A stretch of DNA of 64,000 nucleotides from Klebsormidium nitens (lineage: Eukaryota > Plantae > Klebsormidiophyceae). The notes beneath the pieces are model-generated. The model was not told where the DNA came from, searched no databases, and saw nothing but the letters and a program-made list of their open reading frames with translations. The stretch spans positions 62,001-126,000 of the forward strand of contig DF236983.1 of assembly GCA_000708835.1 (NCBI GenBank). The letters run 5' to 3'. Of the stretch, positions 10,587 to 16,441 are shown in pieces. A program made the translations under genes and the position numbers. Within the stretch, counting starts at the first letter, position 1. Every line of letters starts with the position of its first letter.

Positions 10587-11954
10587 TCAATTGTTCGAGT
10601 TCTCAATGCTTATCAAGCGCGGCTCCTCCACGACTATTGTAAGTCTTGGCTTTCGCTTTTGCAGATTCAGGAAGCTTGTTACCATGTTGACTAGGGGACC
10701 GTTTACACCTCTCAGGTCGATTTTCAAGTGTGTGAGCACTTGGCTTGCCTCAGCAATCTTGACGCAGAAATGTACTTCCTCCATACTAGTAGCATCTACC
10801 ACCAGCTTCAAGAGGTTCCTAAACGACAGCGACACGATCCTCTCTGAGGACTGATCTACAAGGGCTTCCAAAAGCCTGATGCTCGTATCCAATGTCTTCA
10901 ATCTCCGCAGGTACATGAGGATCTCTGCGGCTTTCTCGATGTTGCTATTTTCGAATGCCACATCCTCGAGATCAAGTATTTCTAGGTCCCTTGAAAGCTG
11001 TAGCACCTGGAGAAAGGGCTCCTCTTTCCACGTGTTGGACAGCCTCAGTTCTCTCACCTTCCAGGGCGTGGATCCATGAATTGGTCCTTCTGGCGCCCGT
11101 TGGAAGTGCAGATTGCACAACTCTGGAGCATTGATGCATGTCTCCCGGCTGTCAGGCAGGTGCAGCCTTTTCAAGCGTGGCGTGTCTATTTCCAGTTTTG
11201 TCAATATTTCGTTTGATGTGGCGTTGTCAAGCACAAGAGCAGTAAGAGTTTGCGACTCCACCCTCAAGCTTGCAACACCACAAAGTCCTCTGATTGTCAG
11301 CTTCTCCAAAGCCGGAGCCACCTGATGTAGCAAGTGGTCCATTGCAGCTCTGGTGATCGATAACGAGTTTGTCAGGGCCAGTGCTTTCAGATGGAGAAAA
11401 GGCGTCAGGTTGCGCACAGGGCTCCAGATAGGAACTCTGCAGCGCACAAGCTCAATGGACTTGAGCAAAGGGCACCTAGACAGAGCCCTGAACAGCTGTT
11501 GTGTCAGCTCGTCAGCCTCATTTCCTAGATCACCATAAGTCAGGCGGAAGCGTTCCAGCTTTGGAGTGGAATTCAGCGCCCCTGCGAGCAGACCACCAGA
11601 GATGGTCATAAGGGTAGTACCTTTCCGCTTGCAGATCAGGTTCATCCTTCTCAGATCCTCTGCCTCTTGCAGGAAGAACAGGAGCCGTGCGTCCATTGTC
11701 CTGGCTGCATTCAGCACGCAGACGACCCCTTCCACCTGCAAAGCAAGCTGGTTAAACCGTCGCGACACCGGCCTCAGCCGTGCAAGCTTCTTGAAGTCTG
11801 CGGCCGGGTCTTTAGAAGTGGGACTCTCAGCAGGTCTCCCGGACGCCGCTTTAACCGGCAGGTCTCCCGGACGGACGATGATGCGACTCAGCAATGTATC
11901 TGGCAGCAGTTCAAGGGGGCAAGTGGCACCAGATCTTGCTGACGTGGCGGCCAT
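10587..11954 (-). CDS. Intronless F-box/LRR-like protein (455 aa)
   Basis: Uninterrupted ORF from ATG; N-terminal F-box-like LELLPDTLLSRII...LRPVSRRFNQLA; then repeated LxxLxL segments (LERFRL, LKSIEL, LKALAL, LEKLTI, LEILDL). Confidence 0.75.
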   Translation of the reverse strand: MAATSARSGATCPLELLPDTLLSRIIVRPGDLPVKAASGRPAESPTSKDPAADFKKLARLRPVSRRFNQLALQVEGVVCVLNAARTMDARLLFFLQEAEDLRRMNLICKRKGTTLMTISGGLLAGALNSTPKLERFRLTYGDLGNEADELTQQLFRALSRCPLLKSIELVRCRVPIWSPVRNLTPFLHLKALALTNSLSITRAAMDHLLHQVAPALEKLTIRGLCGVASLRVESQTLTALVLDNATSNEILTKLEIDTPRLKRLHLPDSRETCINAPELCNLHFQRAPEGPIHGSTPWKVRELRLSNTWKEEPFLQVLQLSRDLEILDLEDVAFENSNIEKAAEILMYLRRLKTLDTSIRLLEALVDQSSERIVSLSFRNLLKLVVDATSMEEVHFCVKIAEASQVLTHLKIDLRGVNGPLVNMVTSFLNLQKRKPRLTIVVEEPRLISIENSNN

Positions 11955-13337
11955 TGCAGCTTCTGGTTCTTGTAGCTGAGTGGATGAGAGCTCTAGCTCT
12001 TGGAAGACGGTAGAAGTAGCTGGATGTTGAGTGGGTATGAAACTCTGAGTGGCATGGCGGGAATAGAAATAAAGACAGGCCGTCCGTTTGGTGCTACGAC
12101 CTCCCTACGACGCTAAATACCTGTTGCTTGGAAGAATTGAAAGCATTCCTAGAGCAGAAGGACTCGGTGGAGGCCAGGCGCTGGCGTGCCCAAAAGGTGT
12201 GCAGTGCAAGTTGGCCCTTTGAACACATTTGTCGCGGCAGCCTGCATCCATCCAAGTTGCACGTAAGGATTATACCAGAATGCAAGCATGCGTAAAGACT
12301 CAAGCAGACCAGCTCTACCTAGGTTTCCAGCAAGAAATGAGCAAGATTCACAAGTTGCAACCGGCAGGGGTCGTTCAAGCATCAGCACGGGCGGTTGTAC
12401 CGGCCAGGTCCCCTCTGTCTCTGATCCGACCTACCTAGGTATCACAAAGATACCTAACTTTGACGGGACGTACGTTGCAACGTTTCAGCCTGAGGTGGAC
12501 ACGCCATGGTGTGATTGCAACGTTCTTCAATTCCTGCAGTTGCTTTCTTTCTCGTCCGACGAGTCGGACCCGGCCCCGGCGAGCCACAAATGATGGATCA
12601 CTGGGGGATCACTGCCAATTTGGTCAGCGATCTTGCCCGAGTCGTCACTGCAAACGACCCGGGTCCAAATGGCGACCGGGAAAGTAAGGCCGTCCGATAA
12701 ACAGCTTGCAAGCATCTGACGGTTAAGCTGACCCAGGGATCAGGAGAGATAAGCTTCCGGTAGGCCGCTCAGCAACCGTCAACATACAAAAGCCGCGCGC
12801 GCACAAAAACTGGCGCTGGACTCGGACAGCTGCACTTGAATGCCCATGCAATGCATGATGGCATTGATGCAACAAAATGGCGCGTAAATCTGAGAACCCT
12901 GCTATGTTGCCTGTCACGTGGCAGTGTAGGCAGCTTTGAGCAAGCTTGCTGCTTGAAGTTGAATGAAGGCAGATGTTGGGATTGAAACTTTTAGTGAGGT
13001 TGTCGCCCGCATCACAGAAAGCAGCAGCCGCCATTTTGCATTTATGTCTGTGTTGAGGGCGTCAAACTTGTTGATTGCAGCGCTTCTAATGGTGGTAGTT
13101 GATGAGAAAAGTAGTTGCAGCTGGGGGCATCAGCAGCAATACTATGAGCACAAAACTAAATGAGTAGCTTTGGCGCTCCCAAGCATCGACACGTCGTCTA
13201 TTGCTCGACATATGTAGCACTAGAAGAAGAGTCTGCCACAAGGTGTGTTGTAAAGGTGTGGATTGATGTTGCAATAACATTCTCTGAGTAGGACTGATTC
13301 AAGGATCTGAATTTCTCCTTTTGGTTCCAGACAAGCG

Positions 13338-16300
13338 ATGATGCAGGGGCGGCCAGACTTTTGGGACCGACAGATTGCGCGCCCGCCAAATGAGCACTGG
13401 CGCGAGAGCACCTCCTCACATCAACCTCTTCCCCGTCCGATCGGGATGTCAATCGCTGGTGGTGACTGGTCATCTTATCATCAGGGGTCTCCAGATCTGC
13501 CCTTTCAGCCCCACGGCACGTTTGCATATCAGACTACCAGATCCGGCCCTCCCGAACTCGGTCTTAATGGCGCCTTCTCACATCCGCTCCCTCACCAACC
13601 GGGTCCGCCAAACCACGGGCCTGTTCGCACTCCATACCAGCAGACACCTGAACACCACCAGCCCCTTGGACTGGGAATGAACCAGATGGCAGACCAAACG
13701 CTTGCAGGGTTGGGCCCGCGCTTTGGCCTCCGGCCTGGGGGTTCATTTGCCCCCCGACCATACCCCCCGATGCATGTGAGTGGTGCCGATATTGGTCAGC
13801 AGCAGCTGGGACGGGAAGGCATTCTTCCGACGCCTGTTCCAGGGACATATAGTTCCGCTCCCGGTTGGCACCGGCCAGTTAGCGCTCAGTTGATGCAGGC
13901 TGCACCGAGGGCTGTGCGGCCACTTGTCTGGGGGCCGAACGGGAGCGGGGTCGTTTTGGTGCACGGCGCTGAAGGGAGGCATGGTAAGGGGATGTTATTC
14001 ACGTGTTCCTTGGCTCTCAGTCATGATGGTTCAATAGTGTTCGCACAAAGCTTCCCTAGGAATTACTCCCTGCTTTCACATGTACCCAATCTCGAACTGA
14101 ATCCACCATGAAAGGTGTGTTGGTCTGCTGATTGTCACAACGCGACTCTGTCAGTACGGCAGGGAAGCTTTCTGACACTGGCTCGGTGTCTTTTGCCATC
14201 GCACGATTACTCTGCACTAATGGCTCCTTCCCCCATTGAAGAGTCTTGCAGCTTTTGAGCTTCCGGTTCCTGTAGCTTACGTACAACCTTTATCCATTTG
14301 AGCAAGCCAACCAAACTTCCATTCAAACCTCACAGGTCCCAACCCCACCTCTCAAAGCGGCAACATACGCCAATTTCGACAAGAAGACTCGCGTGCTGGA
14401 GCCTCCAGTGACAAGCCGCCATCCGATGCAAAACGATCCAAAAATGGTTACAACCACGGTTCATCATCTCTCTCATTTCGAGATGTCCAAGCTGCTTCGC
14501 AAACAGACATAAAGCCTCCGATCAAGCAATCTCTGGAAAGGCGAGAGGTAAACCCGGGGGGTGGAGTAAAACGGCCGGCCAGCGCACAAGGAAGGGAGGA
14601 AAAGAGGCAGCGAACGGAGGCGCCGCGGGTGCCTGGGTGGAAGGCAAAAGCGGCGGAGGCGGTAGACGTTACAGACCAGTTTGCACTGGAGGATGTAAAC
14701 AGTGAGTGGGCCAATTTTTGGAATTTCTTTTTCGAGGATTATGTGCAAGCAGTGTTGTTCCTGCATCTGAACCCCTTTTGCAATCATGGGACCTCCACAA
14801 GGCATGTGAAGGTGCTGTTGACATGTGTATCTGGGCCATACTTTGCAAGATTGTTCAGCGTAAGAGGTGATTACGACTTTGTGGTAAGAATCATTGTTCC
14901 GTTGATTCCCTGGTAAGAGTCGCCTGGTTGAGTATAAGCCAGCAATTCAACTCTTTTAAAAGGAGCACAACCATCGCGCCAGTGATGATCAAACCGACAC
15001 TCTAGTGACGACCAAACCGACACTCTAGTGACGACAAATCGGTGCAAGTTTGTCAAGCCCCGCTCGTTCCACAAAACATGTGCATGCACTCATCAGTACA
15101 GGAGATTGAATACTGCATTGGTCTGTTACCCTGTCCTCACTTCAAATAATTTCACCTTTGAAGCATCTCATTCCTCATCTCTAAAGCAGCGTCCTCCTTC
15201 GAAGTATACTTTACACGCTTATCCTCTCTTCCAGACTCGTTAACAGAGATCCGCAACCCTTACATTTCTTCTCCATGCTTCTAAATTTTTCTAGCCGTTT
15301 CCCGAACCTCTAGTATCTCCTCCGCTACCAAGCACATCCCAAGCCGACCCGTCAAGCAGAAGACGTGGAACTCCCCACCTTAAGTTTCTTCTGCGGACGC
15401 GCTTGATCGGATCCCCGGTCGAGATCGGAGCGTCCTCTACGGTTCCGTTTTCTCTCCCCTGCTTCCAACCCTGTTCTTGCCGGCCCGTCGAGCAGAGGAT
15501 GCGTTCAAGAAGAAGGTGGAGCGCGAGACGGATGCGCACCGCCTGGCGCAGCGCCAGAAGCAGATCGACTTCGGCAAGAACACGCTCGGCTACGAGCGTT
15601 ACCTCGAGGTCACCCCAAAGTAAGCGGACTCCCAGAGTTGCAAAAAGCCCACTTTGGCCTTATTGTATCCCGCTTTTAATCGTGGACGCTTACCTTTGCT
15701 TTGATATGCGGTTGTCCGGCTTTTGTTTGCATCCAAAGGATCGGGTAATTGGTTAGATCTTAGTGTATACATTAGACTCCTCGAGCCTTGAACCGATCCC
15801 ACAGATTCTTCTGAGCTGAGGACCCGTTTTGGGCGAAGCGTCCTCCACGTGTCTCTATTTTTATTCCCCTCTAGTTTCTACTGCACAGACCACAAGACAG
15901 CGTTCACTCGCCGAAAGATCTTGCATTCCTTCCCCTGAAGCGCCGTCGAGCTCGAGCCCTGGTGAACCGTCACAGTTCCGCCTTCAACCAAAGAGGAAAC
16001 CGCGCCATGAGTTGACACGCCTACATCCGTTGTTTCTGCTCCTGACAATCTGACGGGCAAATAGGCTCAAATTGCCCACACAACTAGACAGGCAATACGT
16101 AGCGAACAACCAGCAATGGAGTTTCTTGCAAATGCAGGGCCAAGCGGCAGAAGGGCGACCCGACCACCCCGAGGATTCACCAGGTGTGCAGCAAGCGCAG
16201 CTGGGACGGGCAGATCAAAAAGTGGCGCCGATTCCTCCACCGGTACGACCCCCCGGTTGACGACGAGGCGGAGTTTGCGGAAGAAGAGTACGTACCGGGT

Positions 16301-16441
16301 TACCGGGATAATGCCGGCGGGGTTAAGGAGGATGAGACTGGTGCTGAGGGTGCCCCAGAAGAGAGTGCGGAAGAGGAAGAGGCGGAAGAAGTTAAGGCTT
16401 CGATTTTCGAGGATGATGAGGATGAGTTCGTCGGGTTGTGA
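13338..16441 (+). CDS. SLBP: Histone mRNA stem-loop (hairpin)-binding protein, ~479 aa
   Basis: Exons 13338-13983, 14336-14701, 15496-15619, 16138-16441 join in frame (1440 nt). They encode [70 protein letters not shown], matching the SLBP RNA-binding domain as recalled for human (RRQKQINYGKNT..Y.RY...P..TP.K....SRRSWD.QIK.W...LH.WDP), followed by an acidic tail. A strong acceptor at 13330 means further upstream exons are possible. Confidence 0.9.
14990..15035. repeat. Perfect 23-bp tandem duplication in an SLBP intron
   Basis: CAAACCGACACTCTAGTGACGAC x2. Confidence 0.9.

Follow-up and report, generated by a model that had tools for sequence, protein, structure and literature searches.

The window, which is the whole stretch of 64,000 nucleotides that we analysed, contains a gene for a histone stem-loop-binding protein (SLBP) on the forward strand at positions 13338-16441. 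In our refined model the gene has four exons and 479 codons and ends with a stop codon at 16439-16441; all three of its introns are of the GT-AG type and every phase fits (Table 1). The sequence-only reading of this DNA had tentatively placed the gene in a streptophyte alga, and this is what the host proved to be. The DNA belongs to Klebsormidium nitens (Klebsormidiophyceae; assembly GCA_000708835.1, scaffold DF236983.1), and one neighbouring gene matches KFL_000340090 of this species with 100% identity. The scaffold is 323 kb long and carries ordinary nuclear genes around the SLBP gene. A related alga has a syntenic SLBP orthologue, which we used for comparison throughout.

Table 1. Positions, in window coordinates, of the exons, key residues and motifs of the K. 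nitens SLBP gene
Feature	Position	Strand	Description
Exon 1	13338..13983	+	Begins with the first in-frame ATG past the stop at 13308; 215 codons and 1 nt
Exon 2	14336..14701	+	Basic region (KRPAS...) with a conserved block at its end
Pre-domain motif VDVTDQF	14662..14682	+	Counterpart of [VL]D[VYF][TS][NH][KR]F in other SLBPs
Conserved block in intron 2	14990..15066	+	91-100% identity to the relative
Exon 3	15496..15619	+	First half of the RNA-binding domain
Exon 4	16138..16441	+	Second half of the RNA-binding domain, acidic tail, C-terminal motif and stop codon
Thr-Pro of TTPR	16166..16171	+	Aligned with human Thr171-Pro172 (TPNK)
Arginine equivalent to human Arg181	16196..16198	+	SKRSWD versus human SRRSWD in the 4L8R_C alignment
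C-terminal motif	16400..16438	+	Klebsormidium form of the sI[YF][DE][DG]W tail motif, without the Trp

The reading frame of exon 1 is uninterrupted from 13311 to 14108, and its GC content by codon position is 0.70/0.56/0.56, compared with a flat 0.45-0.51 in the introns. It encodes a Pro/Gly/Gln-rich N-terminal region that is probably disordered and in which no Pfam match was found. At the corresponding place the relative has a reading frame that starts with MQGRP, stays open for 234 codons and is 29% identical. Exact look-ups of the exon 1 reading frame and of an F-box reading frame each returned no record. The acceptor of exon 2 is cacAG/G at 14334-35, and its donor, CA/GTGAGT at 14702, was set at 14701/GT by alignment with the relative, which has GTAAGT. 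Exon 3 begins after a cAG acceptor at 15494-95, with a tandem gAG at 15491-92 that is likewise in phase, and exon 4 begins after gcAG at 16136-37.

The gene is already annotated, SLBP Pfam domain included. In the public annotation of this scaffold, positions 13893-16441 of the window are assigned to a product of 294 residues that carries PF15247. This product equals our 479-codon model without its first 185 codons, so the three junctions are independently confirmed. The two models differ in the start codon, which is at 13338 in ours and at the internal ATG at 13893 in GenBank, and the annotated product is probably 185 residues too short at its 5' end. The longer gene model is a modest but useful outcome. 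The K. nitens entry was not among the matches of a representative search, nor among those of a word search that started from the Adiantum SLBP.

The RNA-binding domain is divided between exons 3 and 4. Taken alone, exon 3 matches positions 1-31 of the PF15247 (SLBP_RNA_bind) profile with 43.1 bits (E = 4e-11), and exon 4 matches positions 33-70 with 54.7 bits (E = 1e-14), so that each exceeds the Pfam cut-off of 27 bits on its own. Profile position 32 comes from the split codon, and the two halves are colinear and joined in phase. With four open exons, this makes the domain complete and the gene intact, as had been proposed from the sequence. Both exons also match the chains of human SLBP (4L8R and 4QOZ) and of Drosophila SLBP (4TUW, 4TUX and 4TV0), with about 45-60% identity in the domain halves, and this likeness is far beyond chance. 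The K. nitens protein and these animal SLBPs (the human one is also called HBP) share a domain of about 70 residues with the motifs RQKQIxYGKNT, TP, SRRSWD and W..LH.WDPP in the same order, followed by an acidic stretch. They differ in the N-terminal half, which is unrelated, and in that the metazoan SLIP1-binding motif is not detectable in K. nitens.

Residues with known roles in human SLBP are kept almost throughout. The alignment to chain C of 4L8R pairs TTPR with human TPNK and aligns the end of the domain with human SWD, ALH and WDPP, so that both the TP motif and the SWD...LH.DP end named in the sequence-only reading are present. K-R-S-W-D pairs with human R180-R181-S-W-D, with Trp183 and Asp184 kept; FLH pairs with ALH, with His195 conserved; and YDPP pairs with WDPP, which keeps the DPP end. 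TPRI stands in place of human TPNK, and QIDFGKNT has Phe for Tyr144, as do the SLBPs of Diphasiastrum and Cymbomonas. The relative has the same Thr-Pro, as do nearly all of the 150 matches listed; SP, IP or VP stands there in a few. The roles of Arg181, Thr171-Pro172, Trp183, Asp184, His195 and Tyr144, including that of TPNK phosphorylation, have been described for the human protein, in which Arg181 makes the sole base-specific contact to the stem-loop, at G7 (PMC10388802).

Comparison with the syntenic orthologue revealed strong purifying selection on the gene. In the domain omega is about 0.03-0.07: exon 3 has 0.026, and the part of exon 4 that belongs to the domain has 0.065. In the tail it is 0.09; pS is about 0.66, and synonymous sites are near saturation. 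Exon 3 has 38 of 40 residues identical to the relative, with 84% identity in DNA. Exon 2 is 43% identical overall, and its last 35 codons are near-identical with an omega of 0.10.

We put the probability that the K. nitens gene is a working SLBP at about 0.88, with the conserved domain as the observation and the histone stem-loop role as the prediction drawn from it. The domain would clamp the stem-loop at the 3' end of replication-type histone mRNAs. Its arginine equivalent to Arg181 would read the second guanine of the stem, and the Thr-Pro site, if phosphorylated as is probable, would stabilise the complex. By analogy with animals and Chlamydomonas, the bound SLBP would then support the 3'-end processing, stability and translation of histone mRNAs that have no poly(A) tail. 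The disordered N-terminal half, the VDVTxxF motif and the C-terminal acidic aromatic motif probably recruit partners. The window contains no histone gene or histone stem-loop, and a scan of it with Rfam at gathering thresholds, RF00032 included, was empty. Elsewhere in K. nitens, stem-loops are reported to follow H2A, H2B and H4 genes; they are described as divergent and without the canonical loop uridine (preprint 10.64898/2026.10.14.759114), so recognition might differ in detail. In Chlamydomonas, a moss, a fern and a cycad, poly(A)-less histone mRNAs occur together with SLBP (PMC13130582).

It is improbable that the protein has been repurposed in Klebsormidium, to bind other RNAs or to act outside histone mRNA metabolism. 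The loss of the Trp from the otherwise conserved C-terminal tail motif and the fast evolution of the N-terminal half would suit such a change, but the residues with a known part in contacting or stabilising the histone stem-loop are kept, apart from Phe for Tyr144, and the low omega of the domain also argues against it. We know of no ligand class for the PF15247 domain besides the histone stem-loop, which we likewise count against repurposing. The preprint that reports the K. nitens stem-loops bears on both sides: their divergence and the proposed 'decoupling' of SLBP from the stem-loop in plants favour repurposing, but the very presence of stem-loops at K. nitens histone genes speaks against it (10.64898/2026.10.14.759114). 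The strong constraint on the gene argues against decoupling in Klebsormidium, and a working SLBP remains the reading that we prefer.

Among named sequences, the closest matches of the K. nitens SLBP are from land plants and green algae. Those of land plants (Adiantum, Ceratopteris, Ginkgo, Sphagnum, Ceratodon and Diphasiastrum) come closest, with 58-71% identity in the second half of the domain. They have in common with it VDVTxxF at the same spacing, an acidic DPPxxDxEE stretch and a C-terminal motif equally far from the domain, whereas the N-terminal regions do not align and the Klebsormidium tail is without the Trp of sIY[DE]DW. The green-algal SLBPs of Cymbomonas and Chromochloris share the domain and its presumed role with that of K. 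nitens, although they belong to Chlorophyta and K. nitens to Streptophyta; in Chromochloris, unlike in K. nitens, the domain is at the N-terminus. Among plants, an SLBP together with non-polyadenylated histone mRNAs was first known from the Chlamydomonas/Volvox lineage.

These matches change what the K. nitens gene can say about the switch to polyadenylated histone mRNAs. The sequence-only reading had held that land plants lack SLBP and that an SLBP in a streptophyte alga would date the switch. Our searches contradicted the first statement, as complete domains were found in all six land plants named above. Land-plant SLBPs have also been treated as a group (PMC13130582; preprint 10.64898/2026.10.14.759114). 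Direct RNA data from 2026 show that hairpin-ended histone messages persist in mosses, ferns and some gymnosperms, and the histone stem-loop system has been lost in Selaginella and angiosperms, from which SLBP is absent (PMC13130582). Since SLBPs are kept in land plants, the loss must have occurred within land plants, at least twice, and phylogenetic bracketing leads one to expect an SLBP in a streptophyte alga. As had been proposed, the stem-loop pathway persisted into the streptophytes and its loss came later; because mosses, ferns and gymnosperms keep SLBP, however, the K. nitens gene does not date the poly(A) switch, and it adds nothing to the dating of SLBP loss. That SLBP is absent from land plants, and that the switch fell at the transition from algae to land plants, is thus highly improbable: the host does belong to the streptophyte algae, and angiosperms and Selaginella are without SLBP (PMC13130582), but complete SLBPs occur in mosses, a lycophyte, ferns and Ginkgo. 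The K. nitens gene instead fills an expected slot among streptophyte algae, the broad question having been answered in 2026. As the lycophyte Diphasiastrum has an SLBP, the published 'loss in lycophytes' does not hold for the whole group.

That the gene is a decaying relic or a mis-assembled SLBP-like gene that makes no working protein, as the annotated model, shorter than the reading frame suggests, might hint, is barely credible given intact reading frames in four of four exons, canonical splice sites throughout, strong purifying selection with synteny conserved in the relative, and a 323-kb scaffold with ordinary nuclear genes as neighbours.

Two short conserved motifs flank the domain, and we regard them as minor new points. 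The pre-domain box, [VL]D[VYF][TS]x[KRQ]F at 36-39 residues ahead of GKNT, is seen in streptophyte SLBPs. In the form [VL]D[VYF][TS][NH][KR]F it stands 36-38 residues ahead of GKNT in 19 SLBPs that we fetched, the named ones among which come from mosses, a lycophyte, ferns and Ginkgo; the spacing in K. nitens is 39, and the chlorophyte Cymbomonas has the box in a looser form. The tail motif, sI[YF][DE][DG]W, was seen in about 40 SLBPs that we fetched, among them those of mosses, a lycophyte, ferns, Ginkgo and Galdieria, a red alga. It lies 54-99 residues past the domain and 3-21 residues ahead of the C-terminus, and would be at least as old as the ancestor that red and green algae share. Its Klebsormidium form is nearly identical in the relative. 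Several marine matches (ENA/Tara/JGI) have SIYDDWEGSDDDFGGV at their end, similar to the EDEFVGL with which the Klebsormidium protein closes.

The SLIP1-binding motif of animals is defined as W-G/A-D-x-V-E-x-x-E (PMC3763545) and was not found outside animals in a previous survey (preprint 10.64898/2026.10.14.759114). Reading the four exon translations by eye, we likewise found no W-[GA]-D-x-V-E-x-x-E. We considered the C-terminal motif as a candidate for this site and rejected it, as by the published definition it is too near the end and lacks a hydrophobic residue at +4 (PMC3763545). We found no description of the two short linear motifs of plant-lineage SLBPs. Our tentative suggestion, for which the odds are well below even, is that they could be docking sites that replace the SLIP1-binding and processing motifs of animals, and that Klebsormidium, without the Trp in its tail, may have rewired the contact. 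The two motifs could guide a search for the partners of plant SLBPs.

The non-coding parts of the locus were also inspected. An E2F-type promoter site, TTTGGCGC at 13169, lies 165 bp upstream of the ATG; it was rejected because the sequence is no commoner than chance (8 found against 12 expected), nor is the site conserved in the relative. Neither TGTAA nor AATAAA poly(A) signals occur within 960 nt 3' of the SLBP stop codon. Intron 2 contains a single block that is conserved in the relative; the remainder of the intron does not align. The block has no D box, folds no better than shuffled sequences and has no match in Rfam, two sub-threshold matches in the scanned stretch falling outside it. 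It starts with a box-C-like GTGATGA and includes CAAACCGACACTCTAGTGACGAC, a 23-nt unit of which K. nitens has a duplicate, and we consider this conserved intronic block a further minor new point.

The gene for the histone stem-loop-binding protein (SLBP) of Klebsormidium nitens, traced by DNA reading and frame translation, has 479 codons in four exons, and every intron is GT-AG. We set the junctions by splice consensus, phase and alignment to a related alga that carries a syntenic SLBP orthologue (contigs L001, L002 and L003). The donor of intron 2 reads CA/GTGAGT in K. nitens and CA/GTAAGT in the relative. Its acceptor is a tandem, GAGCAGAG (15491-15497), which is also kept in the relative. 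Because both the cAG (15494-95), chosen for the model, and the gAG (15491-92) are in phase, two isoforms that lie one residue apart are possible. The public annotation of scaffold DF236983.1 (323,557 bp) contains a 294-residue product with the SLBP domain PF15247 at 13893-16441, which is the present model started from an internal Met (91 + 366 + 124 + 301 nt = 294 codons). This exact match independently confirms the three junctions, including the choice of cAG.

In the public annotation, translation is set to begin at an internal ATG, 13893. Several observations favour the start at 13338. The frame stays open from 13311, and the first ATG to follow the stop at 13308 is the one at 13338. The GC content by codon position across 13338-13892 is 0.70/0.56/0.56, and it is flat at 0.45-0.51 in the three introns. 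The relative has a 234-codon open reading frame at the place that matches exon 1, which starts with MQGRP as in K. nitens, the remainder being only 29% identical. The true start is thus probably 13338, as the sequence-only reading had placed it, and the public model would be 185 residues short at the N terminus.

We scored exons 3 and 4 separately against Pfam, and each exceeded the PF15247 cut-off of 27 bits: exon 3 covers profile positions 1-31 (43.1 bits, E 4e-11) and exon 4 covers positions 33-70 (54.7 bits, E 1e-14). The codon split by intron 3 (AA/G) supplies the position between 31 and 33, so the two halves join in phase as a complete domain. Each of these exons also matches solved SLBP chains from human (4L8R and 4QOZ) and Drosophila (4TUW, 4TUX and 4TV0). 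When exon 4 is aligned with 4L8R chain C, TTPR falls on KTPN of the human protein, where Thr171-Pro172 of the TPNK phospho-motif lie; phosphorylation of TPNK strengthens the SLBP complex (PMC10388802). SKRSWD falls on SRRSWD, making the second basic residue the equivalent of Arg181, FLH falls on ALH (His195) and YDPP falls on WDPP. A 17-residue stretch of the first half of the domain (exon 3) aligns on RRQKQINYGKNTIAYDRY with a Phe in place of Tyr144, as in the SLBPs of Diphasiastrum and Cymbomonas. By eye, the exon translations contain no SLIP1-binding motif as defined in PMC3763545, in agreement with a preprint that saw none outside animals (10.64898/2026.10.14.759114). In the SLBP of Chromochloris zofingiensis (P0192, residues 8-22), the N-terminal SSWADEMSVGDTE is a weak match that fits part of the animal motif: it has the Trp and Ala at +1, with hydrophobic and acidic residues at +4 and +8, respectively.

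Coordinates of the SLBP exons and neighbouring genes in the window
Feature	Position	Strand	Basis or identity
ABCG-type transporter	window start		
F-box/LRR gene, single-exon	10587-11954	-	KFL_000340090
SLBP	13338-16441	+	
SLBP exon 1	13338-13983	+	splice consensus, phase, alignment with related alga
SLBP exon 2	14336-14701	+	splice consensus, phase, alignment with related alga
SLBP exon 3	15496-15619	+	splice consensus, phase, alignment with related alga
SLBP exon 4	16138-16441	+	splice consensus, phase, alignment with related alga
Protein kinase	18.2-22.1 kb	-	
Utp21/WDR36	28-34 kb	-	
TyrA-like dehydrogenase fragment	37.5 kb		
PEP carboxylase	45-47 kb		
NmrA-like gene	53 kb		
PfkB kinase	60 kb		

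The surroundings of the gene are ordinary nuclear DNA. The F-box/LRR open reading frame (10590-11954) is 100% identical to the hypothetical protein KFL_000340090 of K. nitens, and scaffold DF236983.1 of assembly GCA_000708835.1 matches the window base for base, which bears out the earlier view that the host is a streptophyte alga and places it in the class Klebsormidiophyceae. The annotated KFL_000340090 product has 487 aa, with a gene range of 3.2 kb, whereas the plain open reading frame has 455 codons, so the two differ at one end. An orthologue with 80% identity was found in a Logan assembly (P0194).

A representative search with exon 4 as the query returned 862 matches at E ≤ 1e-3, the top one, with 70% identity across the whole exon, coming from metagenome and Logan contigs of the related alga. 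The locus is syntenic: in both algae it is followed by a protein kinase gene on the opposite strand. At the DNA level, only the end of exon 2, exons 3 and 4, and a single block within an intron are conserved. From Nei-Gojobori counts between the two algae, omega was 0.026 for exon 3, 0.065 for the domain part of exon 4, 0.10 for the last 35 codons of exon 2 and 0.09 for the acidic tail, with synonymous sites near saturation (pS about 0.66 over the SLBP domain). Pooled dN/dS was taken from counts summed over the two exon segments. These comparisons indicate strong constraint on the gene in both algae. Together with the domain matches and junctions, they show that the gene at 13338-16441, which the sequence-only reading had called intact, is indeed so, is under constraint and encodes a complete SLBP domain with its key contact residues. 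Judging from the solved SLBP structures of human and fly and from published data on plants, the protein would bind the hairpin at the 3′ end of replication-type histone mRNAs in K. nitens and, once bound, would support the processing, stability and translation of these mRNAs without a poly(A) tail. No histone stem-loop was found in the window, in which Rfam reported no RNA family at gathering level.

The same reading had held that land plants lack SLBP and that the algal gene therefore dates the switch to poly(A) histone mRNA. Close named relatives of exon 4 in the representative search came from the lycophyte Diphasiastrum complanatum, the ferns Adiantum and Ceratopteris, and Ginkgo; a search seeded with a fern SLBP added the mosses Sphagnum and Ceratodon, more Ginkgo paralogues and many protists. 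The domains of the land-plant and other relatives from both searches are all complete. In published work (PMC13130582, Genome Biol, March 2026), SLBP is likewise described from green algae, Physcomitrium, Adiantum and two species of Cycas; histone mRNAs that end in a hairpin and carry no poly(A) tail are reported from Chlamydomonas, moss, fern and Cycas debaoensis, and loss is reported in Selaginella and angiosperms. The switch therefore falls inside land plants, not at their origin, and phylogenetic bracketing predicts that a streptophyte alga should have SLBP. The evolutionary significance first attached to the gene is thus partly mistaken. It is also pre-empted: a eukaryote-wide SLBP survey (preprint 10.64898/2026.10.14.759114, October 2026) reports that in K. 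nitens stem-loops follow H2A, H2B and H4, and both the gene and the stem-loop pathway were already known. Selaginella is the sole basis for the 'loss in lycophytes' of PMC13130582, and this loss is not true of all lycophytes, because D. complanatum keeps two loci for long SLBPs of 786-868 aa (P0003, P0012 and P0153), whose domains are complete.

This Diphasiastrum SLBP may be a new point, as may three conserved elements outside the domain. One is a block in intron 2 (14990-15066, about 50-75 nt) that is 91-100% identical to the relative (L001:3688-3740), the remainder of the intron not aligning. In K. nitens the first 23 nt of the block (CAAACCGACACTCTAGTGACGAC) form a tandem duplication with GTGATGA ahead of it; the block had no Rfam match and folded no better than shuffles. 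Another is a pre-domain box, [VL]D[VYF][TS][NH][KR]F, which 19 fetched SLBPs (among them P0013, P0015, P0159, P0160 and P0003) carry 36-38 residues before GKNT; those with a named source are from mosses, a lycophyte, ferns and Ginkgo. We found no description of this box in the literature examined. The K. nitens form is VDVTDQF at the end of exon 2 (14662-14682), and its position 39 residues before GKNT also supports the exon 2-3 junction. The third is a C-terminal box, sI[YF][DE][DG]W, which about 40 fetched SLBPs carry 54-99 residues past the domain and 3-21 residues from the C terminus; proteins of land plants, of unnamed marine clusters and of the red alga Galdieria share it. C-terminal motifs are not mentioned in the preprint. 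In Klebsormidium and its relative, a Trp-less 13-residue form takes this place (16400-16438 in K. nitens). Another set of SLBPs ends in [RK]xLVF instead.
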